Source: Oopsacas minuta (taxonomy: Eukaryota > Animalia > Porifera). From it: DNA of 64,000 nucleotides. Location of the stretch: contig JAKMXF010000353.1 in the NCBI GenBank assembly GCA_024704765.1, positions 68,925-132,924 of the forward strand. The letters are read 5' to 3'. Positions 5,453-45,459 of the stretch are shown piece after piece. The position numbers and the translations under genes were made by a program. Each line of letters opens with the position of its first letter. Positions within the stretch are counted from its first letter, which is position 1. Below the pieces are notes generated by a model. It ran no database searches. It saw nothing but the letters and a program-made list of their open reading frames with translations, and was not told the DNA's origin.

Positions 5453-6262
5453 CTTTGAGATTTGTGCCACATTGCCTAATAGGCTGCCAAAAGCGACACA
5501 ATACACAGTTTGATTATCGTATAAACCTGAATATTCTCAAAATTGATGCTTCAACCACTTCACATGACCATACCGCGTAAACTATAACCTCAAAATGGCA
5601 AAAATGTAAGTCAGAGTGTCTTCTTCCCGAAAAAGTATGTCTCACGACACCCAGTGACACACATGGGGTCCATGACCACTTGACACCCTCTGAGCCCCTG
5701 GATTTGATAAAAAACCTTTCAATGATGTGTCCACCGAAAACGAGAATAACGCGCGATAACTTTGGAGGTTGAATGATTGACATAGTTTCACACTTAAGAC
5801 ACAATATTGATCTGCTAATGAATGCATATAATGTAATCCAATTATAGTGGCATCAAATGTGGCACAGTAGTGGCATGAATTCTTATTAGTTACTGTCTTT
5901 TTGGTAATTTGGCTTCCAGCTATTTATAGCATGATTATGGCAATATTAACCATCTGCCACGTCTGAACACAATTTGATAAGAAGTGTCAGATATTCATTC
6001 TACCCAATCGCCTCGTTTTTGGCGGGATATCTCACTTCTCGGAAGTAGACAACTTTAGGAAGTGGTGGAGTATATCATAAAGTGTCGCGCTGTAACCGAC
6101 ACAACTTAAGGGGTCTATGAACACTGGTCGTGAATCACTGGTGTACAAACAAGCAAGTAAATAAGACAGTTTGTCCAAGTAAAATGAAAAAATTTATACA
6201 AAGCATGCAAATGTAAAATCTAAATAAACACAACACTACTCAATTCTTATTTACAAAACAAG

Positions 6263-6850: not shown

Positions 6851-7639
6851 GTTAAAAATGTCGGGATTAAAAGCTAAGTGGTCGTTATGTAGAAGTGGCA
6901 GCTGTAGACACATATTGCCAACACTGGAAATCGCCTTAGTATCCCAGGGTTATTTATACCCACATGCATATTCTAGGGAATTTGTCAATATTGGGCGATT
7001 CTTACTTCATTTTAGGGATCCCAAAATTACAGTTGGAACCGTTGAGGGTACACAGTTGAGTAACTTCAATGACGTACATTTGAATTTCGCCGTGTGTACA
7101 AAATCCTAACTGAAACCATTCACAAATACTCATTGAATTGTCTCATTAAAGTAAACAAATATGTTTGTTTACAACTTCACGTGTGAGACAATCTATTGTT
7201 TACAGTGCATAGTAGGAATTGTTGTCTTTAATTCTGATAATATGGACATAGCCAGAACTAAATATGGAAATATAAATGTCAATTACTAAATATAGTGGCA
7301 GTTTAGTGGCAGTTTAGTGGCATTATAAGAATCCTGTTCACAAATCTTAGAAGTGTACTATTACATACAGAAAACTTGTATTCGGGCGAGACGGTTGGTC
7401 ATCATTTCTTAGAGTAAGATATCGCTTCCATATTGAGTTAGAGTTTAAGAGACTTATGTGTCAATTTTCAGCTGGTGACGCCTGCCAAATCTGCAATCAA
7501 CCCCGATCAATACAGACCCTTGTTTATGACAAGAATCATGCATAAGTGATTAAAATTACTCTGATAAATACAGGTTGCTAGGGTCGGAATTATTAGCAGG
7601 CCCAACGTAATTATAAATATGCTAGCACTAATTTTTACA

Positions 7640-7700
7640 CATTCTGTGGACCCCTCCCATAGAGTGCAATACAAATTGTGAGATCTTGTGGACCCCATGA
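7640..7700 (-). mobile_element. hAT-MITE fragment, inverted relative to 6788-6850
   Basis: GGACCCCTCCCATAGAGTGCAATACAAATTGTGAGATCTTGTGGACCCC is the reverse complement of the same family. Confidence 0.6.
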
Positions 7701-7998
7701 TGATGTCCGTGTATCACCAATGGGTCCATGACGCCAGGTTGAGATACCTGGATTATACAAAAAAGGTGTCAATATTGAATAAAAATCTTAGAATACTTTT
7801 AACTATATAAGGTGATGAAAGTGGCCTTTATGAAATTAGAGGAACATTTTGAAGAATTCAAATAGTTTTGTCATAATGCCCACAATTCCAAAGAATAAAA
7901 TGATAATATATAAACTCTCAAAGAAAGCCAGAAGCCAATGACACAAAAGAAATTAAACTCAAATATTATGCCACCGAAAAGTGTCAGCTACGTGACAC

Positions 7999-32947: not shown

Positions 32948-34435
32948 TTATAGTAAAATTACAAATATTTCAAGATCAACCCCATCATCTCTTATAAATT
33001 CTTCTTTTAAGATAGGGATATCAGCAATATCTTCACTGCTACCACCTTTCTGCTTTATTTCTATGATACCACTTTTAGATTCCCACGTGACATTGGGGAC
33101 GCTAGGGCTAAATATACGAAATATGAATTTGACTTTGACTTTATATAATTCCTGGCGTGGGTAACGAATACTTATTGAGCCATATTTTGAAACCCTTAAG
33201 GTGAAGTTAAACTCATCAACTTGAAATTCCTGCTGCTGGCCATTTTGGAATCGGTAAGAGAAATAATTGTAATAGCTGGAGGATCTACCATCAACCACCT
33301 TCTCAATTCTCCATTCTAATTTAGAGGAATTTGTGATGGAAAATAGCGCAGCTAATTGTCGTTCAATAGTTTCGTTCTGCTTGTTAATCATTTCGCTCTG
33401 TTGCATAACAATCTCTTCCATAGCACTGAGTTTCAATTCTGTGTGTTCAGTCCTCTTCTCCTTCAAATGTTGATTGAGTTTCTTCCTCTTGATTAGTCCT
33501 ACTTCACACTTGTACTTTATAAACGGACACTCTACCTTCTTCTCTACACACTCCTCCTCTAGGTGTTGTGCCATGTCCTCACGATAAGCCACTGTGCCAC
33601 ATTCTAGTTCACATGTCAGTCGTATCTTGGGACACTCTTCTAGATGGTTAGGCATAGCACAAGCTTTGAAATCTTTCTGGCAATGTTTACATGGTATTTT
33701 ACGTTGTACACACATTGTATTTACATGTATATCGAGTTCATCACGTGGTAGCTCTATTCCACATCCTAGTTTGCATTTCTCTACCACACGACCACAATCT
33801 TTCTTTAGGTGTTGTGCCATATCCTCGCGACACATCACTGTGCCACATTTTTGTTCACATGTCATTCGTATTTTCGGGCATTTTTTGAGGTGGTTAGACA
33901 TGTCACAAACTCTAAAATCTTTCTTGCAATGCTCACAAGATATTTGACGAAAATTACACTTCTCGCTGACATGTATTTTTAGCTCATGACGTGATAACAC
34001 TATCTTACATTCTAGTTTGCATTTCTCATAAACATGTCTACACACATCAAGATGGTTCTCACATTCTCCTAGTGTTCCTAGCCATTCACAACCACGCTTT
34101 TGTAAGGGACACGAGCATTTGAGAGAGAGGACTGTGTCCCTCACGTGTGTATTAGGACTGGTTTGCTCATAGCTACGATACGAGATGTATAATTCTTCAT
34201 GATTCCTACAACACTCACAAAATTGTTCCCCACTAGTTGATATGCAAGCCTCTCTTAGTATTCCCTTACAACGTTTACAAACAAGGAGTGCAATCTCTCT
34301 GTGCGTCAATTTTTCAGTTAGAATATCCTTCCTATAACCTCGATATTCTCCTTCCTTTCCTTGGACTCGACACAAATCCCTCCCTATTTCGGATACGAGT
34401 TGTTTTGTATTCCCTTCAACACGCTTAGTTGCCAT
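32948..34435 (-). CDS. TRAF-like protein 1 (degenerate RING, tandem TRAF Zn fingers, coiled coil, divergent MATH), 495 aa
   Basis: Intact single-exon ORF; CPL..RGCEWLG..ECENHL..C finger, repeated C..C...H...C fingers, MATH start LEWRI and end FIRDDGVDLEIFV. Confidence 0.9.
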   Translation of the reverse strand: MATKRVEGNTKQLVSEIGRDLCRVQGKEGEYRGYRKDILTEKLTHREIALLVCKRCKGILREACISTSGEQFCECCRNHEELYISYRSYEQTSPNTHVRDTVLSLKCSCPLQKRGCEWLGTLGECENHLDVCRHVYEKCKLECKIVLSRHELKIHVSEKCNFRQISCEHCKKDFRVCDMSNHLKKCPKIRMTCEQKCGTVMCREDMAQHLKKDCGRVVEKCKLGCGIELPRDELDIHVNTMCVQRKIPCKHCQKDFKACAMPNHLEECPKIRLTCELECGTVAYREDMAQHLEEECVEKKVECPFIKYKCEVGLIKRKKLNQHLKEKRTEHTELKLSAMEEIVMQQSEMINKQNETIERQLAALFSITNSSKLEWRIEKVVDGRSSSYYNYFSYRFQNGQQQEFQVDEFNFTLRVSKYGSISIRYPRQELYKVKVKFIFRIFSPSVPNVTWESKSGIIEIKQKGGSSEDIADIPILKEEFIRDDGVDLEIFVILL

Positions 34436-36985
34436 TTCTTACTTTCAATTCACTTTTTTTAACATAAATACATTATACTTAATATACCTCGGGGTATCAC
34501 ATGGAAATAGTAACCAGATACACACGTTAGTGCCTATACTATATATGTTACAACTCTATTTTTACCAATTATTCGTACGATAGAGAGCTCTCTAAAATAG
34601 GATTAACATAACTTTCGGGGCATAAAGCCAAAAATTCAGTTGTAGCATTTCCCCTTAATGTTATGGTATAGGGCGCCGAACGCGAACCTTCTAACAGTTT
34701 GAACTATCCCCCGGGTTCCGTGCATTGTGTGAAAATTAAATATTCCTTCAGCTTAGTTCTTCATTCTAATTTAGTGGTATACATTAGCTAAGTACTGAGA
34801 TGAATCTATCAGAGATGATGGGAATGATCTTGAAATATTATACAGGTGTCTAAAGGTGTGAAATATTCATATAGGTACAAGTAGATGTCACTAAGAGTAC
34901 ACATGCCAAATTTGGTGTCTTAATCTCTTAAGGTGTTAATAGTGAGCGAGTACATGTATACTATGTCAACCATTTAGAACTGAGCCACTGTACTAATAGT
35001 GTTTGTTGGTACAATAATAATTATCAATCTAAAATCTACATCGTTACTTGTGCTAAATTATTTACAAAATACAAATAATTCGAGTTCGATCTCGTCATCT
35101 CTGACAAAATCAGGCTTAACTTCAGATTTGGGGAATCTAACAACTTCCCTTTTGAGTTTAGAACTCTGATAATCTTTTTTGTTCACCTCTATCATTTCAC
35201 CTTTAAAATCCTTTGTGCCTTTTGGGTTGCTATGACAAACCAGACGAGCTACGAATTCAGCTATGAAAGGCCATTTTAGTGAAAAATAACCCCATCCATC
35301 CTTAGGGAGGAATAAAATCTGTATTGAATCAGCATCGCAAGAAAACTGAATTTCAAAATTATATCCATCAATTTGAGATTGTTTTTTAACTGTAGGATGA
35401 TTGGAACCCAATTTATAACATATGCTGTCTATTCGCCATTCTACTTTAGCAGCTCTAGCGATTGTAAATAAAGTTCGCTTCAAATCTCCAGCTTCAGTTT
35501 CTAACACTTGAACTGTGTGAGTAAGTAGTTTCACTTCATTACTCTGTTGCATAATAATCTCTTCCATAGCACTGAGTTTCAATTCTGTGTGTTCAGTCCT
35601 CTTCTCCTTCAAATGTTGATTGAGTTTCTTCCTCTTGATTAGTCCTACTTCACACTTGTACTTTATAAACGGACACTCTACCTTCTTCTCAACACACTCC
35701 TCCTCTAGGTGTTGTGCCATGTCCTCACGATAAGCCACTGTGCCACATTCTAGTTCACATGTCAGTCGTATCTTGGGACACTCTTCTAGATGGTTAGGCA
35801 TAGCACAAGCTTTGGAATCTTTCTGGCAATGTCTACATGGTATTTTACGTTGTACACACATTGTATTTACATGTATATCGAGTTCATCACGTGGTAGCTC
35901 TATTCCACATCCTAGTTTGCATTTCTCTACCACACGACCACAATCTTTCTTTAGGTGTTGTGCCATATCCTCGCGACACATCACTGTGCCACATTTTTGT
36001 TCACATGTCATTCGTATTTTCGGGCATTTTTTGAGGTGGTTAGACATGTCACAAACTCTGAAACCTTTCTTGCAATGCTCACAAGATATTTCACGAAATG
36101 TACACTCTTCTCTTATATGTATGGATAGCTCATGACATGGTAACACTATATCACATCCTAGTTTGCATTTCTCATGAACATGACTACACAAATGAAGATG
36201 GTTCTCACATTCTGCCAGAGTTCCTAGCCATTCACAACCACGCTTTTGTAAGGGACATGAGCACTTGAGTGAGTTGACAGTGTTCCTCACGTGTATATTC
36301 GGACTTATTTGTTCATACCTAGGGTATACGTTGCCAACTTCTTCATGATTCCTACAACACTCACAAAATTGTTCCCCACTAGTTGATATGCAAGCCTTCC
36401 TCATAATTCCCTTACAACGTTTACAAACCAAGAGTGCAATCTCTCTGTGTGTCAATTTTTCAGTTAGAATATCCTTCCTATAACCTCGGTATTCTCCTAC
36501 CTTTCCTTGGACTCGACACAAATCCCTCCCTATTTCAGCTACGAGTTGTTTTGTATTCCCTTCAACACGCTTAGTTGCCATTTCTTACTTTCGATTCACT
36601 TTTTTAACATAAATACATTATACTTAATATACCTCGGGGTATCACATGGAAATAGTAACCAGATACACACGTTAGTGCCTATACTATATATGTTACAACT
36701 CTATTTTTACCAAGTATTCATACGATAGAGAACTCTCTAAATAAGATGATCATAACTTTCGGGGCATAAAGCCAAAAATTCAGTTGTAGCATTTCCCCTT
36801 AATGTTATGGTATAGGGCGCCAGACGCGAACCTTCTAACAGCTTGAACTATCCCCCGAGTTCCGTGCATTGTGTGAAAACTAAATATTCCCTCGGCGTAA
36901 TTCTTCATTCTAATTTAGTGGTATACATTGGCTAAGTACTGAGATGAATCTATCAGAGATGATGGGAATGATCTTGAAATATTTC
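33398..36985. repeat. Tandem duplication, period about 2.15 kb (33398-34840 vs 35544-36985)
   Basis: Coding and upstream non-coding sequence align almost base for base. Confidence 0.9.
35058..36581 (-). CDS. TRAF-like protein 2, 507 aa
   Basis: Near-identical to locus 1 up to MQQS; different MATH with LKWPF and DFVRDDEIELELFV. Confidence 0.9.
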   Translation of the reverse strand: MATKRVEGNTKQLVAEIGRDLCRVQGKVGEYRGYRKDILTEKLTHREIALLVCKRCKGIMRKACISTSGEQFCECCRNHEEVGNVYPRYEQISPNIHVRNTVNSLKCSCPLQKRGCEWLGTLAECENHLHLCSHVHEKCKLGCDIVLPCHELSIHIREECTFREISCEHCKKGFRVCDMSNHLKKCPKIRMTCEQKCGTVMCREDMAQHLKKDCGRVVEKCKLGCGIELPRDELDIHVNTMCVQRKIPCRHCQKDSKACAMPNHLEECPKIRLTCELECGTVAYREDMAQHLEEECVEKKVECPFIKYKCEVGLIKRKKLNQHLKEKRTEHTELKLSAMEEIIMQQSNEVKLLTHTVQVLETEAGDLKRTLFTIARAAKVEWRIDSICYKLGSNHPTVKKQSQIDGYNFEIQFSCDADSIQILFLPKDGWGYFSLKWPFIAEFVARLVCHSNPKGTKDFKGEMIEVNKKDYQSSKLKREVVRFPKSEVKPDFVRDDEIELELFVFCK

Positions 36986-37209
36986 GTAATCATAAATATA
37001 CAAATCTGTTTACTAGATAATTGACTATTTGCTCAAAGTATGTATACATGTATATTTGTTAATATAATAAAATCTCAAATGTATTTTGAGCACATGACGT
37101 GGTAACACTAGCTCACAGTCTTGTTATCTACTGTATTATTGAATACCAAGTAATTAACTAACAGCAATATACATATGTATTAATAACAGGTAAATAGTAA
37201 TAAATATGT

Positions 37210-38491
37210 TTAAAGTAAAGTTACAAATATTTCAAGATCTATATCTCTGGTGAATTCTTTTCTTGCAGGGATTGTAGCAATAACATAACTTTCGCTACCT
37301 TTTGCTTTATTTCTATTATATTACTTTTAGATTCCCAAATGACATCAGGCTTGCTAGGACTAATAATACGAAATATAAATTTGACTTTGACTTTAGATAA
37401 TTCCTGTCGCGGGTAATTGATATATGTATATTGAGCCATGAATTAGCTGTAAAATAAAGTTAAACCTATCAACTTGAAATTGTTGGGAAGTTGAGTGATT
37501 GTAATCTGTCATAGAATTTACCACGTTTTGAATTCTCCATTCTAACTTAGTGGTATTGGTGATGGAAAGTAGCGTTTTAAATTGTCCGTTCTGTTTAGTA
37601 ATCATTTCGCTCTGTTGCATAACAATCTCTTCCATAGCACTGAGTTTCAATTCTGTGTGTTCAGTCCTCTTCTCCTCCAAATGTTGATTGAGTTCCTTCC
37701 TCTTGATTAGTCCTACTTCACACTTGTACTTTATAAACGGACACTCTACCTTCTTCTCTACACACTCCTTCTCTAGGTGTCGTGCTATGTCCTCACGATA
37801 AGCCACTGTGCCACATCCTAGTTCACATGATAGTGGCATTTTTTGCACTTTTTATTGTGGTAAAACATTTCACACGCTTTGAAATCTATGTGACAGTACT
37901 CACAAGGTATCATTCGTCGTACGCACTCATCATTCACATGCATACCGAGCTCATCACGAGGTAGCTCTATTCTACATCCTAGTTTGCAATGCTCTATCAC
38001 ACGACGACAAAGAGATATCACAAACTTTGAAATCATGCTTACAATGCTCACAGGGTATTTTACGATACAAACACGTTTCTTTCATATCAATATTGAGCTC
38101 ATGACGTGGTAACCCTATTTCATATCCTAGTTTGCATTTCTCATGAACATAGCCGCACACATTGAGATGGTTCTCACATTCTCCTAGTGTTCCAAGCCAT
38201 TCACAACCTCGATTATACGAGGGACACGAAGACTTGAGTGAGAGGACTGTTTTACTTACATGTGCATTTTGGTGTTTCTGTTCCCCCTTTCTGGTACAAC
38301 AGGAACAAAATTCATTGACAACGCTTACAAACCAGGAGTGCAAGCACTCTTTCTGACATATTTTCAGTTATAATATCTGTTCTATAACCTAGAGATTTTC
38401 CTCCCTCTGCTCTGACTAAATACAATTCCCTCGCTATTTCGGGCACGTTCTCATCTGGTTCTTGATAAATTTCAACACGCTTAGCTGCCAT
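37210..38491 (-). pseudogene. TRAF-like locus 3, disrupted
   Basis: ATG at 38491; deletion in RING gives CKRCQ-TGA; further frameshifts split the fingers and MATH across ORFs 37972-38343, 37818-38051, 37393-37848, 37239-37439. Confidence 0.85.
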
Positions 38492-39453
38492 TTCTTACAA
38501 AAATACACTTCTTGGTATATTGTTAATTATTCGCCCAGGGTATCTCATGAAAATAGTAACCAGATACTTCAGTTCCTAGTCTACTATATTCCCATATATT
38601 TATATGATTATATCGCTATATACATTTTCAGTGTTTGTCTATCACCCCGATGATCGTTCCTGGAGAATGAACACAAATTAGAATGAAAATACGCCATACA
38701 ACATCGAAAAGGTACTATCCCAAAAATAACTAATCTAATTATCATTTTGTAGACCAATAAAACCTATATCAACAGTTTGGGGCATTGTTTAAACAATGTC
38801 CAGGAAAAAAACTGATCAACACAATAATAGACGGGCTACACACATAAGATTATTCTCAAACTAGTAATACTCAAAGAGGTGTTCATCGTGGGAACGATCA
38901 TCTCCCGTTAGATAAACTCAATTTTCATGGGTAGATGAATTTGTTGACATTATTGATTCTAAGCTTGGAAGGTATTTATGTAGATCAGACGTATATACTA
39001 GTAAAATACACCTTGTAGCTGAATTACATTGATTATATGGGGAAATTATGACAATATTTGTGGGTTGCCATATCAGATGCAGGAAGTGGAGCTGAATCAT
39101 GTTTTCACTAACAGTAACAGAGGTCTAATATAATAACGTCTAAGTGATGAGCTGATTAACCGTAGCTAATAAATACTCTACAAATTCTGTATATTTGTAT
39201 GCATTAACAGATAACCTCTGATGCTGTGAATTTATCCACAGCCTTAAGTGCCTGATTACAAACACAACGTGATACTCACTTATCTCTAACTAATTATTAA
39301 TTCATTGATTGATTAGATATGTTGAAATAGCGGATTTGTCTTTTGGAGATGATTCACAATTATTATTATTATTATGCCAGTCATTACGATATCTCATTAC
39401 AATCTTTATGTATTGAATTGATTTATAACCAAGCAATGAATGTATTATAAGAA

Positions 39454-41406
39454 ATGGCAACTGAATCCGTGGAATATCTCGAACCCGAGATAGGTAAATC
39501 TTTGTGTCGAGTCAGAAGACAAAATGGAAATTTGGGTGGTTATAGGACAGATCTTTTGGTTGAAAATATTTCAAAGACAGATATGGCTGCATTGGTTTGT
39601 AAGCGTTGCCAAGGAATCTTAAGAAAGGCATATTTTTCGGCTACTAGCGGCGAGCATTTTTGTAAATGTTGTAAGAATTTGCTGGAACCAGCAGAGCCAA
39701 ACGAACAAGTGAGGAAAATAGTCCACTCACTGAAAAGCTCGTGTCCTTTATACGACAGAGGTTGTGAAGGAATAGGAAAGCTGGGAAAATGTGCGAAGCA
39801 TCTCACTATATGTGAGTTTGTTTATGAACAATGCGAACTAGGCTGTGAGATAGTGTTACCACGTCATGAGCTCAAAATACATATGAGAGAACATTGTGCA
39901 CAACGTGAAATTACCTGTGAGTATTGTGATCAATATTTCAAAGTGTGTGATATGGGTTACCATATGAATCAGTGTGACAAAATGCAACTAACAAGTGAGC
40001 TGGGATGTGACACAGCGATGTGTCGTGAGGATATGGCACAACACTTAGAGAAATATTGTCGTCGTGTGATAGAGCATTGCAAACTAGGTTGTGGAATTGA
40101 GTTACCACGTGATGAGCTCGAGATGCATATGAATAATGAGTGTGTACAACATATGATACCTTGTAAGCATTGTAAGAGAGATTTCAAAGTTTGTGACATG
40201 CGTAACCATTTGGAAGAGTGCCCAAAAATGCTACTAAATTGTGAACTAAAATGTGGCACAGTGATGTGTCGCGAGGATATGCCACATCATTTAGAGAAAG
40301 ATTGTGGTCGTGTGATAGAGCATTGCAAACTATACTGTGGAATAGTGTTACCACGTGAGGAACTGAAAATTCATATGAAGGAAAAGTGTGAATATCGTAA
40401 AGTAGCATGTGAGGATTGCAAGAAAGATTTCGAATTTTGTGATATGTTAATACACCAACCAAAATGTCCAAAGGTTCGACTGAAATGTAAAGAAGGATGT
40501 GGCACAACCGTGGATCGTGAGGATATGGCACAACATCTAGAGAAAGATTGTGGTCGTGTGGTAAGGAGATGCAAACTAAGATATGGAAAAATAGTACCAC
40601 GTGATGAACTCAATATTCATATGAAGGAAAAGTGTGTACAACGTATGATACCTTGTGAGCATTGTAACATAGATTTCAAAGCTTGTAACATGTCTAACCA
40701 CAATAAAAAGTGCAAAAAAATGCCACTATCTTGTGAATTAGGATGTGGCACAACGGTGAGTCGCGAGAAAATGGCAAAACACATAGGGGAAGAATGTGTA
40801 GAGAAGAAGGTAGAGTGTCCGTTTATAAAGTACAAGTGTGAAGTAGGACTAATCAAGAGGAAGAAACTCAATCAACATTTGGAGGAGAAGAGGACTGAAC
40901 ACACAGAATTGAAACTCAGTGCTATGGAAGAGATTGTTATGCAACAGAGCGAAATGATTAGAAAATTTTCTAACAGATTTACAGCACTTTGTTCCATCAC
41001 CAAAACCACTAAACTCAAATGGAAAATTGGAAATATAAGAAATAATTTATCCTCCAACCTTTCTTTAACTTCTCCACTATATGAAGTTGCTGGATTCAAA
41101 TTCAATTTCAATTTATCGAGTTATGCCTCTATAAATATTCATTTCCCAAACCAGGAAACGTCCAAATTTGCTTCTGGCAAACTAAACTGGCCTTTCAAAG
41201 CAAAATTTCTATTTCGTTTGATTTGTCATAACGATCCAAATGGCACATTGGAATATAGAAGCAGAATTGAAATAAAGCAGAAAGATTGCAATAAATCTGG
41301 ATACATCAGTGATCCTGTTGCTCAAATAAATGCTGAACATGCAACTAATATGTACTATATGATAGATGGAGGGATTGATCTGGAGATATTTGTAATTTTA
41401 CAATAA
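39454..41406 (+). CDS. TRAF-like protein 4, 650 aa, four Zn-finger triplets
   Basis: Intact single-exon ORF; MATH with LKWKI, LNWPFKAKFLFRLICH, DGGIDLEIFVILQ. Confidence 0.9.
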   Translation: MATESVEYLEPEIGKSLCRVRRQNGNLGGYRTDLLVENISKTDMAALVCKRCQGILRKAYFSATSGEHFCKCCKNLLEPAEPNEQVRKIVHSLKSSCPLYDRGCEGIGKLGKCAKHLTICEFVYEQCELGCEIVLPRHELKIHMREHCAQREITCEYCDQYFKVCDMGYHMNQCDKMQLTSELGCDTAMCREDMAQHLEKYCRRVIEHCKLGCGIELPRDELEMHMNNECVQHMIPCKHCKRDFKVCDMRNHLEECPKMLLNCELKCGTVMCREDMPHHLEKDCGRVIEHCKLYCGIVLPREELKIHMKEKCEYRKVACEDCKKDFEFCDMLIHQPKCPKVRLKCKEGCGTTVDREDMAQHLEKDCGRVVRRCKLRYGKIVPRDELNIHMKEKCVQRMIPCEHCNIDFKACNMSNHNKKCKKMPLSCELGCGTTVSREKMAKHIGEECVEKKVECPFIKYKCEVGLIKRKKLNQHLEEKRTEHTELKLSAMEEIVMQQSEMIRKFSNRFTALCSITKTTKLKWKIGNIRNNLSSNLSLTSPLYEVAGFKFNFNLSSYASINIHFPNQETSKFASGKLNWPFKAKFLFRLICHNDPNGTLEYRSRIEIKQKDCNKSGYISDPVAQINAEHATNMYYMIDGGIDLEIFVILQ

Positions 41407-41712
41407 ACGTATTTGTTTAGTGAAAATACCATCAAAATATTTGTTGTAATTTGTGAATATTTCTTATGTGTATTACTATAATAATTCGCTAATTATTTTA
41501 GGATGTTTATTAGGTGTTAAATAAGTATTCGCCCAAATGTGAGCCATTAAGTCGTTCTATTCTGACCAAGTAAACCGATTACATGATACCCCATAGACTA
41601 TGAGGGTCAGGTATCCAACTAGATTTATCCAGCATTGCTAGGCACTAAAGTAAATATAATGTTACCCCAAGTATTTATAATCAAGAAATGATTTGATAAT
41701 GAATTTTATGAA

Positions 41713-43024
41713 ATGGCTGAGAAGTCCTTTGAAAATGAATCAAATGATCCAGAATTATTAATAGACGCAAAACAACTATTCCTACCCCAGATAGGAAGGG
41801 AGTTGTGTCGAGTCAGAGATTCGGACGTAATAGGCCCTAGGCACTACTCTGACATTGGAAGGGCAGTTGACAAGTTTAGTTCCCAATCTTCAAACGACAA
41901 CCGGATAGTTCACTTAAGCAAACAGGGTTCGGGAGAAGGACACGTAATCCGAGCAGATTCCCTTAATATAGGAGGGAGCCTAGGATGCAGATATAAATCA
42001 GACAGAGGAGAATTTCGAGGTTATAGGCAAGATATCCTAAAAGAAAATTTATCCAAAAGAGAGAGTACATTCCTGTTATGTAATCGTTGTAAAGGAATTA
42101 TGAGAGAGGCCTGCATATCATCTAACGGGGAACAATTTCGTGAGTGTTGTAGGAAACTCAGGCCACGTGACCTGTATGAATATACTAGCCTGAATACACA
42201 CGTCAGGAACACAATCCTCTCACTCAAGTGCTCATGTACTTCACACTTGTGCTTTATAAACGGACACTCTATCATCTTTTCAACACACTCCTCCTTTAGG
42301 TGTCGGGCCATGTCCTCACGACAAGCCACTGTGCCACATCCTAGTTCACATTTTAGTGGCATTGCGGGACACTTTCAATCAACATTTGGAGGAGAAGAGG
42401 ACTGAACACACAGAATTAAAACTCAGTGCTTTGGAAGAGATTGTTATGCAACAGTGCGAAATGATTAATGAACAGGGTGGAATTAATGATAAACAAAACG
42501 AATTGATATCGAAACAGGGCAAGGAGATAGAGGAACAAAAAGATTTGATTTCGAAACAGAAAGAGACATTAAATGAACAAAAGGATTTGAATTCTAAACA
42601 TAGAGAAAGGATTACAACACTACGTGCCGTCACTAAAACCACAATTGAAGCATGGAGAATTGAAAACTTGCGAGGTATTTTATTCTTGAACTCACCACCA
42701 TCTTATAAACCTTTTGAAGTTGTTGGTTTTAAACTCAATGTAGGCTTTTCAGATACTGTCTCAATAAGTATGCATTTCCCACCTCAGGTAGTCTCTCAAA
42801 CTAATAAACTAGAATGGCCTTTCAGGGCAATATTTGCAATTCGTTTGCTATGTCATATCAAGCCTTCTGATACCTGGGAATTCAGAAGTAAATTGATTGA
42901 AGTAAAGCATAAAGATTATACTAAGAAGCAGTACAGTTGTAAAATAGTTGAAATACCTGCAAATAATGGAATCTTTCTCAGAGATGGAGGAATTGATCTT
43001 CAAATATTTGTAATTTTACAATAA
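41713..43024 (+). pseudogene. TRAF-like locus 5: Zn-finger array deleted and last fingers inverted; possibly rescued by splicing
   Basis: Forward N-terminus to LKCSC (42237), antisense finger sequence about 42238-42374 (ORF 42021-42362), then open coiled coil plus MATH to 43024. Confidence 0.75.
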
Positions 43025-43338
43025 ATGAAGTTGTTTACTGGAAATACCATCCAATATTTGTTATAATATTTACAATATTTTGTTTGCTAATTTTATATAT
43101 TATCAAATTTTATTGTTGTTTGAAATAATTACATATTTCCTCAACTATGAGCGAAGAAAATCTCGTACGATTCCGGCCAAGTGAACTGATTGTACTTTCC
43201 GAATAGACTCTGGGTAACGGGCCGTTTAACCTTATGAATTTATCCACAGCCTTAAGTGTCTGATTACAAACTCAACATGATACTCTAAATAATGAATATG
43301 TTCATTGATAGATTAGATATTTTGAAATGGCGGATTTG

Positions 43339-43358
43339 TCTTTTGGAGATGATTCACA

Positions 43359-43385
<27 letters not shown>
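43339..43385. repeat. (TAT)n microsatellite, expanded relative to the paralogous tract near 39360
   Basis: Direct read; 39225-39400 and 43228-43435 are duplicated upstream blocks. Confidence 0.9.
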
Positions 43386-43405
<20 letters not shown>

Positions 43406-43521
43406 GCCAGTCATTACGATATCTCAGTACAATCTTCATCACTAAAGTATTTTGTTACAAATTTAAGGTTAAACTCAAATGATATATAATAAGAAATGAA
43501 CTGCTAATATAATAATATGAA

Positions 43522-45459
43522 ATGGCTGAGAAGTCTATTGGAGGGGCACCGGAATTATTAATAGACCTAGAACAACCACTCCTACCAGAGATAGGAAGAG
43601 AATTATGTCGAGTCAGAGTCAGAGATTCAGACGTTAAAGGCAAACAGGGTTCGGGAGAAGCACACGTAATCCGAACAGATTCCCTAAATATGGGAGGGAT
43701 CCCAGGGACCACAGGATATAAATCAGACAGAGAAGAATTTCGAGGTTATGGGAGAGATATTCTAACAGAAAATTTAGCGGAAAGAGAGAGTACATTCCTG
43801 TTATGTAATCGTTGTAAAGGAATTATGAGAGAGGCTTGCATATCAACTAACGGAGACAATTTTGTGAGTGTTGTAGGAAACGTGAAGAATTTTACAACTT
43901 GTATGAAAGCTATGAACAAACATTCCGAATACACATGTGAGGAACACAATCCTCTCTCTCAAGTGCTCGTGTCCTTTACTAGAACGGGGCTGTGAGTGGC
44001 TAGGAACACTAGGAGAATGTGAGAACCATCTTGATGTGTGTAGTCATGTTCATGAGAAATGTAAACTATACTGTGGAATAGTGTTACCACGTGAGGAACT
44101 GAAAATTCATATGAAGGAAAAGTGTGAATATCGTAAAGTAGCATGTGAGGATTGCAAGAAAGATTTCGAATTTTGTGATATGTTAATACACCAACCAAAA
44201 TGTCCAAAGGTTCGACTGAAATGTAAAGAAGGATGTGGCACAACCGTGGATCGTGAGGATATGGCACAACATCTAGAGAAAGATTGTGGTCGTGTGGTAG
44301 AGAAATGCAAACTAGGATGTGGAAAAATAGTACCACATGATGAGCTCAATATGCATGTGAATGAAAAGTGTTTACAACGAATGATTACATGTGAGTACTG
44401 TCATATAGATTTCAAAGCTTGTGATATGTTTCAGCACCAGGCAAATGTCCAAAGGTTCGACTGAAATGTGTAAAAGGATGTGACACAACATTGGATCGCG
44501 AGAAAATGGCACATCATCTAGAGAAAGATTGTGGCCGTGTGATAGAGAATTGCAAACTAGGATGTGGAAAGAAGCTACCACGTGATGAGCTCAATATGCA
44601 TGTGAATGAAAAGTGTTTAGAACGTATAATACCATGTGGGTACTGTCATATAGATTTCAAAGCTTATAACAAGTCTTACCACAATAAAAAGTGCAAAAAA
44701 ATGCCAATATCATGTGAACTAGGATGTGGCATACTGGTGTGTCGTGAGGACATGGCACGACACATAGAGGAGGAATGTGTAGAGAAGAAGGTAGAGTGTC
44801 CGTTTATACAGTACAAGTGTGAAGTAGGACTAATCAAGAGGAAGGAACTCAATCAACATTTGGAGGAGAAGAGGACTGAACACACAGAATTGAAACTCAG
44901 TGCTATGGAAGAGATTGTTGTGCAACAGAGCGAAATGATTAATAAAAAGAACGAAAGAATTAATACACAGGATAAAATGATTACTAAACAGGATAAAATG
45001 ATTACTAAACAGGATAAAATGATTGCCAAACAGGATAAAATGATTGCTAAACAGAGTGAAAGAATTGCTATACAGAACGAACAACTTAAAGCGCTATTTT
45101 CCAACGCCAATACCATTAAGTTAGAATGAAGAATTCCAAACGTGGTAAAATTTATAAAATATTGCACTCCCTCAACTTCTCAACAATTTCGAGTTGATAG
45201 GTTTAACTTTACTTTAGAGCTAATATATGGCTCAATATACATTCATTACCCGCGACAGAAATTATCTAAAGTCAAAGTACATTTTATATTTCGTATTATT
45301 AGCCCTAGCAACTCTGATGCCATTTGGGAAACTAAAAGTAATATAATAGTAATAAAGCAGAAAAGTGGCGAAAGATATGGTATTGCTAAAATCCCTCCAA
45401 GAGAAGAATTCATCAGAGATAATGGTATAGATCTTGAAATATTTGTAACTTTACTCTAA
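43522..45459 (+). pseudogene. TRAF-like locus 6, disrupted
   Basis: Frameshifts near 43855 and 44440; TGG-to-TGA at 45127-45129 (LEW becomes LE*); MATH continues to 45459. Confidence 0.85.
44968..45051 (+). repeat. Four 21-bp tandem units encoding QDKMI(T/A)K heptads
   Basis: CAGGATAAAATGATT(AC/GC)(T/C)AAA x4. Confidence 0.9.

Follow-up and report, generated by a model that had tools for sequence, protein, structure and literature searches.

The canonical TRAF proteins (TRAF1-6) carry TRAF-type zinc fingers, then a helical coiled-coil segment, and end in a MATH/TRAF-C fold, and in vertebrate TRAFs it is the MATH domain that sets receptor specificity; TRAF1 has no N-terminal RING. TRAFs are usually viewed as a small conserved set of adaptors acting downstream of variable receptors. 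Here we describe six intronless TRAF-like genes (loci 1 to 6, or w1 to w6), recognised from a list of open reading frames (ORFs) in a 12.5-kb stretch of scaffold C353 of the glass sponge Oopsacas minuta, within an analysed window of 64,000 nt whose numbering is used below. The genes share the canonical order of fingers, putative coiled coil and MATH fold but lack a Pfam-detectable RING, vary in the number of finger units, lie in intronless tandem arrays, and have MATH domains too divergent for Pfam, one class of which is without the WPF (Trp-Pro-Phe) loop. A block of ~150 bp, reaching from the last half zinc finger into the beginning of the putative coiled coil, is nearly identical among the copies, and it is probable that the genes belong to a glass-sponge-specific, birth-and-death family in which this block is homogenised by conversion and the halves on either side of it are re-paired by germline non-allelic recombination.

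Tandem families elsewhere are well known to undergo gene conversion limited to segments and re-pairing of domains, and immune-type families such as primate KIR genes and plant NLR clusters show mosaic evolution by unequal crossing-over and gene conversion. The sponge family resembles these in its birth-and-death arrays with pseudogenes, its apparent sharp-edged segmental concerted evolution, its re-paired recognition domains and its conflicting trees, but it encodes a cytoplasmic adaptor rather than a receptor, and a short coding block is involved in at least 25 copies on several scaffolds. Antigenic-variation cassettes and lamprey VLR assembly are somatic or mitotic systems with silent donors and an expression site; conserved blocks flank variable modules and serve as exchange sites there as in the sponge, whereas the sponge copies are all stand-alone genes and germline-fixed products alone are seen. 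The MATH-BTB genes of grasses and Brassica are described as a large lineage-specific expansion with divergent MATH domains (PMC4091423, PMC3664471). The partner domain there is BTB, in contrast to the TRAF fingers of the sponge genes. We know of no homogenised block common to MATH-BTB families. No report of TRAF expansion, shuffling or block homogenisation in Oopsacas, other sponges or TRAFs was found in the literature, and the O. minuta genome paper, in which the words TNF, MATH, expansion and tandem do not occur, does not mention this family (PMC10280926).

The block had been located at five of the loci, and described as split in locus 5, in an earlier reading of the sequence alone (the sequence-only reading); BLAST places those five copies within a few bases of that account and recovers the split, one part being inverted (Table 1). 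Nucleotide identity across w1, w2, w3, w4 and w6 is 98-100% by BLAST and alignment. The block is not peculiar to this array, as at least 29 matches with 87-100% identity lie on seven scaffolds genome-wide, at least 25 copies on these scaffolds carry it, and nearly all of the ~24 loci recovered by a MATH profile search of the genome have it. Among 21 full copies the mean pairwise identity is 0.90-0.97 in the block, against 0.65-0.80 for the upstream finger unit and 0.4-0.6 for the downstream sequence, and within the block third codon positions (0.915) are as similar as first positions (0.921), compared with 0.72 for third positions upstream. In 171 pairs from 19 copies the proportion of synonymous differences (pS) has a median of 0.12 for the block and of 0.43 for the preceding 150 nt, the block having the lower value in 165 of the 171 pairs, far more than chance would give, and the proportion of nonsynonymous differences (pN) is 0.05 in the block and 0.23 upstream, such that pN/pS is similar in the two (0.43 and 0.54). 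As pN and pS drop together with little change in their ratio, the block looks younger and not merely more constrained. Compared pair by pair, the genes have a synonymous divergence (dS) of 0-0.19 over the block and of 0.3-1.3 over the N-module, finger unit and MATH domain. Block variants show no overall difference when compared by genomic cluster and by gene class (means of ~24 differences each, with frameshifted copies distorting the figures), although in single cases those of w3 and w4 go with the cluster and that of a3 goes with its C-terminal class.

Near-invariance of synonymous sites over ~20 paralogs, including those on different scaffolds, could also be expected of a functional nucleotide element under purifying selection, such as an RNA structure, a target of small RNAs or RNA-binding proteins, or a DNA-binding site. 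Two sponge-derived ENA assemblies, L030 (ERZ25069837) and L031 (ERZ25071281), provide comparison arrays: in both, intronless TRAF-like genes of this family, encoding the same peptide motif, are densely packed in tandem (up to ~10 genes in 21 kb); a segmental duplication of ~4.85 kb spanning several genes is also present in L030. Between O. minuta and these arrays, only 55-65% of the codons that encode the same amino acid are identical within the block, and a control finger gives the same figure, so that between species the block's synonymous sites have diverged as fast as those of the control. L030 contains the same island among its own copies in a weaker form, with third-position identities of 0.73-0.93 in comparison to 0.45-0.70. 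A solitary paralog outside any array (C318:313199-314441, 413 aa) shares the domain order of the family and has a block peptide motif that can still be recognised, but its block is 63% identical in nucleotides and ~0.5 identical at third positions, and synonymous sites are thus not conserved in it; having escaped homogenisation, it would be a useful outgroup. The predicted fold of the block is no stabler than those of shuffled sequences (z = +0.92), an Rfam scan of the whole array gave no match, the pseudogenes w3 and w6 retain the block at 98-99%, and pN/pS is about equal in block and flank. A conserved nucleotide element is consequently quite unlikely, and the third-position identity within O. 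minuta, the divergence between species and in the C318 paralog, the lack of an RNA signal and the retention in pseudogenes together point to array members evolving in concert through gene conversion.

Loci 1 and 2 had been described in the sequence-only reading as near-identical from the promoter through the block and then abruptly different. The alignment bears this out: the two are 92-100% identical from 415 bp 5′ of the ATG to the 3′ edge of the block (Table 1), beyond which identity falls to ~50%, the level of unrelated sequence. The shared N-terminal part is itself a mosaic, with the last 550 bp 100% identical and with patches of 78-88% identity located 460 to 760 bp upstream of the block (-460 to -760) that match other paralogs equally well. 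Within its block, w2 is like w1 at positions 16, 20, 39, 54 and 65 and like b8, its nearest MATH relative, at positions 126 and 141, and this phase of the single-nucleotide differences puts the w2 junction inside the block, between positions 66 and 125. The pair a3 and f1 also switch at the 3′ edge, and the inversion-plus-deletion in w5 has breakpoints inside the block at positions ~47 and ~70. Global alignments are noisy where numbers of finger units differ, such that breakpoints in the finger repeats are approximate. By these comparisons the block is a frequent breakpoint and not an exclusive one. It might further be supposed that the block is a selected cis-acting hotspot of breakage, reassorting promoter and N-terminal halves with MATH domains across arrays on different chromosomes; the breakpoints within it, those of the w5 inversion included, would fit such a role, its lack of exclusiveness does not, and we give the proposal little credence. 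If it were true, there would be a combinatorial repertoire of adaptors in the germline, and conceivably in somatic cells.

The N-module (from LCRV to CENHL, ~300 nt) and the C-domain (~380 nt) were excised from 22-23 copies and separate trees were built. The N-modules form three classes, I (w4, a3, a4, c3, d2 and f1; support 100/100), II (w1, w2, w5, w6, c2 and d1; 98/95) and III (w3, b1-b8, e1 and e2; 89/84), and the C-domains form six, namely alpha (w5, a4, c3), beta (w1, w3, w6, a3), gamma (w4, f1, d2, with d1 as sister), delta (b1-b7), a class of w2 and b8 and a class of e1 and e2. Four of the six C classes are paired with two or three N classes, giving eleven combinations in 22 genes. The sequence-only reading had anticipated that N and MATH trees would disagree, and they are significantly incongruent: approximately unbiased (AU) tests reject every clade transferred from one tree to the other, the p values ranging from 1.6e-4 down to 6e-61 (8e-8 for {w1, w2} on the C data; 6e-61 for {w1, w3, w6, a3} on the N data; 1.6e-4 to 6e-10 for the others). 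Its grouping of the locus 1 end domain with those of loci 3 and 6 is recovered with clade support of 100/99. The WPF motif by which it had linked loci 2, 4 and 5 is present in all three, but their end domains fall into three different C clades, with that of locus 2 nearest to b8 on another scaffold. This incongruence supports re-association of N-modules with MATH-type end domains by ectopic recombination. Pairwise dN/dS values on MATH are mostly 0.2-0.73 for intact pairs, with no clear positive selection; values above 1 occur solely in comparisons with the rearranged w5 or with b6, which has a frameshift in the block, and no claim of positive selection is made.

Each protein is read as a degenerate RING-like N-module, two to six TRAF finger units of 82 aa, a putative coiled coil whose length varies, and a divergent MATH domain. 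TRAF-type zinc fingers (PF02176) are the sole Pfam match in the array, with E values of 1e-17 to 4e-36, and exceed the cut-off in w1, w2, w4 and pieces of w3 and w6; the units are 246 bp (82 aa) long and their number varies among copies. A Pfam scan of the first 130-140 residues gave no RING family even at E up to 10, and by eye a partial cysteine pattern is left in the N-module (CxxC ... CxCC). Heptad-like K/Q/E repeats lie between the fingers and MATH, where a putative coiled coil is read from the sequence, and its length ranges from about 20 to about 140 residues across copies. Tandem repeats of 21 bp (7 aa), K/Q/D-rich heptads, directly follow the w6 block (44924-45091), and a4 (C343 ~7420-7840) has a much longer expansion of the coiled-coil repeat than w6.

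Pfam does not detect MATH in the end domains, the best match being MATH_2 at E 0.064, and a profile of 30 C-terminal domains compared with solved structures gives weak matches in which TRAF and meprin chains rank at the top (best E 0.044). Because these sequence-profile matches are weak, structure prediction was needed. AlphaFold models of the w2 (WPF class) and w1 end domains have predicted local distance difference test (pLDDT) values of 79 and 82, respectively, and in Foldseek both match the MATH folds of SPOP and USP7 with probability 1.0 and template modelling (TM) scores of 0.55-0.62; the w2 model additionally matches TRAF2/TRAF5, and the w1 model has a predicted helix at residues 2-19 ahead of the MATH fold. 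Both C-domain classes, the w1 type and the w2 type, are therefore MATH by predicted fold and not by sequence, which agrees with the identification made in the sequence-only reading. In class beta a 9-residue deletion takes out the otherwise near-universal WPF loop (w1, 32948-33320; w6, 45142-45459; a3, C343 ~5530-5865), and the domain is predicted still to fold as MATH despite this.

The cluster has a mirror orientation, with w1-w3 read from the minus strand and w4-w6 from the plus strand; w1, w2 and w4 are intact and w3, w5 and w6 are broken (Table 1), and roughly half of the family copies are broken. The best named homologues of the array genes are themselves Oopsacas minuta proteins.

Table 1. 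Coordinates in the window of the six TRAF-like genes, their blocks and the segment shared by loci 1 and 2.
Feature	Position	Strand	Description	Basis
Gene w1 (locus 1)	32948..34435	-	Intact, 495 aa; N class II; C class beta (predicted MATH fold without WPF loop)	ORF; zf-TRAF E 9e-21; trees; structure match
Gene w2 (locus 2)	35058..36581	-	Intact, 507 aa; N class II; C class epsilon, with WPF; nearest to b8 (scaffold C343)	ORF; Pfam; trees; structure match
Gene w3 (locus 3)	37210..38343 (low coordinate approximate)	-	Pseudogene in at least 4 frame pieces, 5′ end gone; N class III; C class beta	ORF pieces; stops in both segments; trees
Gene w4 (locus 4)	39454..41406	+	Intact, 650 aa; most zinc-finger units; N class I; C class gamma	ORF; zf-TRAF E 4e-36 over 7 stretches; trees
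Gene w5 (locus 5)	41713..43024	+	Rearranged: N-module, inverted fragment, 3′ block part, coiled coil, intact class alpha C-domain; single zinc-finger unit left	
Gene w6 (locus 6)	43522..45459	+	Pseudogene with its frame broken into four pieces; N class II; C class beta; 21-bp (7-aa) tandem repeat in coiled coil	
Shared segment, w1 copy	33399..34850	-	Promoter, N-module, zinc fingers, block	
Shared segment, w2 copy	35545..36985	-	Same content as w1 copy	
Block of w1	33395..33546	-	99.3% identical to w4 copy	BLAST
Block of w2	35542..35690	-	w1-like at positions 16-65, b8-like at 126 and 141	BLAST; phase of single-nucleotide differences
Block of w3	37609..37760	-	99.3% identical though in a pseudogene	BLAST
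Block of w4, reference copy	40799..40950	+	Island of raised identity from ~40773 to 40956	
Block of w5, 3′ part	42375..42457	+	Block positions 70-152, 96.4% identity	BLAST
Inverted fragment in w5	42237..42362	-	Last zinc finger and first ~47 nt of block (match at 42237-42281); minus-strand ORF 42021..42362	BLAST
Block of w6	44780..44931	+	98% identical though in a pseudogene	BLAST

A 75-nt element ending in (ATT)n precedes the start codon by ~150 bp both in w4 (N class I; element at 39301-39375) and in w6 (N class II; element at 43301-43375), the two copies being 96% identical, and from its presence in both it may be that upstream modules are exchanged too. The inverted w5 fragment at 42237-42362 is bordered by GT and AG dinucleotides. 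Contigs from two of four sequencing runs of one sample have 20 different letters in place of 167 nt of the w3 pseudogene (37842-38010), and this may be either an allelic structural variant or derived from another paralog. Long antisense open frames of up to 138 aa lie over the finger repeats in every copy (33594-33947, 35740-36135, 39969-40600 and others), and look like a by-product of the codon composition of the repeats rather than genes.

Germline non-allelic homologous recombination of three kinds probably gave rise to this arrangement. Unequal exchange within the 246-bp finger repeats would alter the number of units, and short-tract gene conversion, which we infer to be the homogenising force from the pattern of identities, would keep ~150-175 bp near-identical in all array members genome-wide. 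Crossovers or conversion tracts ending in the block would re-pair N-modules and their promoters with different MATH classes; as the block is the last homology before a length-variable coiled coil and an unalignable MATH domain, reassorting exchanges would tend to resolve there, and each exchange would renew the identity of the block. The heterology downstream plausibly halts heteroduplex extension, leaving the sharp 3′ edge, and protein constraint on the last finger and coiled-coil start probably keeps identity sufficient for conversion to continue.

Several points weigh against this account. The pairs w4/a4 and w6/a3 switch within the finger repeats, showing that the block is not the sole breakpoint, and the L031 array is homogeneous throughout, without a distinct island. 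The AU groups other than {w1, w2} and {w1, w3, w6} were picked after the trees were known, although the margins are large enough that this choice matters little. The contigs come from one sample, and conversion is read indirectly, from the pattern of the sequence. The O. minuta assembly was made with SPAdes from Illumina and corrected PacBio reads, followed by scaffolding, gap filling and Pilon polishing (PMC10280926), and such a hybrid assembly can over-homogenise repeats and mis-join at them, so that an assembler or polisher might have collapsed the block and joined N-terminal halves to the wrong MATH halves. A 1-kb contig (C293) ends inside the block, two family members are joined head-to-head in their blocks at a single N (C343:1573-1800), 1.7 kb from the scaffold end, and short-read unitigs (four runs of one sample) extend over every MATH domain but stop 18-30 nt into the block and never bridge it. 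Swapping two blocks of the assembly would, reasoning from the trees, also make the three minus-strand genes class-congruent. The C343 junction had been considered as a second biological breakpoint and was set aside, since the N marks a probable scaffold join of two contigs that both ended in the repeat.

Assembly error is nevertheless very unlikely to account for the pattern. That unitigs built from raw reads break inside the block means that exact 31-mers are truly common to the copies, and the block copies retain copy-specific variants and so are not fully collapsed. A54 and A72 occur only with w1/w2-type fingers and with the starts of the w1 and w2 MATH domains, whereas w3 has G54 and G72 on both sides, all within one k-mer length, and by this phasing the w2 MATH domain cannot belong to the w3 N-terminal part. 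In copies d1 and w5 the block is shortened or rearranged in a way found in no other copy, yet their N class II modules are still combined with gamma-like and alpha C-domains, respectively, and the same island is found in the separately assembled array of another sponge (L030).

A dedicated hotspot or programmed, possibly somatic, reassortment for which the block is a selected cis-signal is extremely doubtful. That a conserved block borders variable modules, that four C classes out of six each occur with more than one N class and that the w5 inversion also breaks within the block are all what such a system would give, but there is no set of silent cassettes with an expression site; each copy has its own ATG, N-module and upstream region, w1 and w2 even having 415 bp of upstream sequence in common. 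The recombinants are fixed in the germline and have diverged since, about half of the copies are decaying, and breakpoints lie in the finger repeats too. From the combinatorial diversification system proposed in the sequence-only reading, germline re-pairing by ectopic recombination with the block as a site is retained, and no dedicated, programmed or somatic mechanism is indicated; the shuffling is recombination of the kind usual in gene families, seen here with unusual clarity, rather than a programmed generator of diversity.

Purifying selection on the protein alone, for example if the last finger and a coiled-coil trigger were needed for trimerisation, would agree with the low pN of the block (0.05) and with the preservation of the peptide motif in homologues from the other assemblies and in the solitary C318 paralog, but it leaves the 3.5-fold lower synonymous difference and the third-position identity of 0.915 unexplained and is most improbable as the sole cause; it probably contributes by keeping identity high enough for conversion. 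A mobile element inserted in all of the genes is rejected, since in other species the corresponding position also holds the block, as coding sequence in frame.

With homogenisation by conversion and germline re-pairing as the preferred explanation, the locus is a clean natural case of segment-limited concerted evolution, in which dispersed paralogs are homogenised in a short block and diverge in both flanks, and it is useful for studying what determines the boundaries of conversion tracts. The presence of such a block makes short-read or hybrid assemblies of these arrays and whole-gene trees unreliable, and the case is a warning for the annotation and phylogeny of similar arrays. In this early-branching animal lineage it is the adaptor that has become a large family with fast turnover (at least 25 copies), and the family's putative recognition domain has been repeatedly re-paired, which suggests that in glass sponges diversity may sit at the level of the adaptor.

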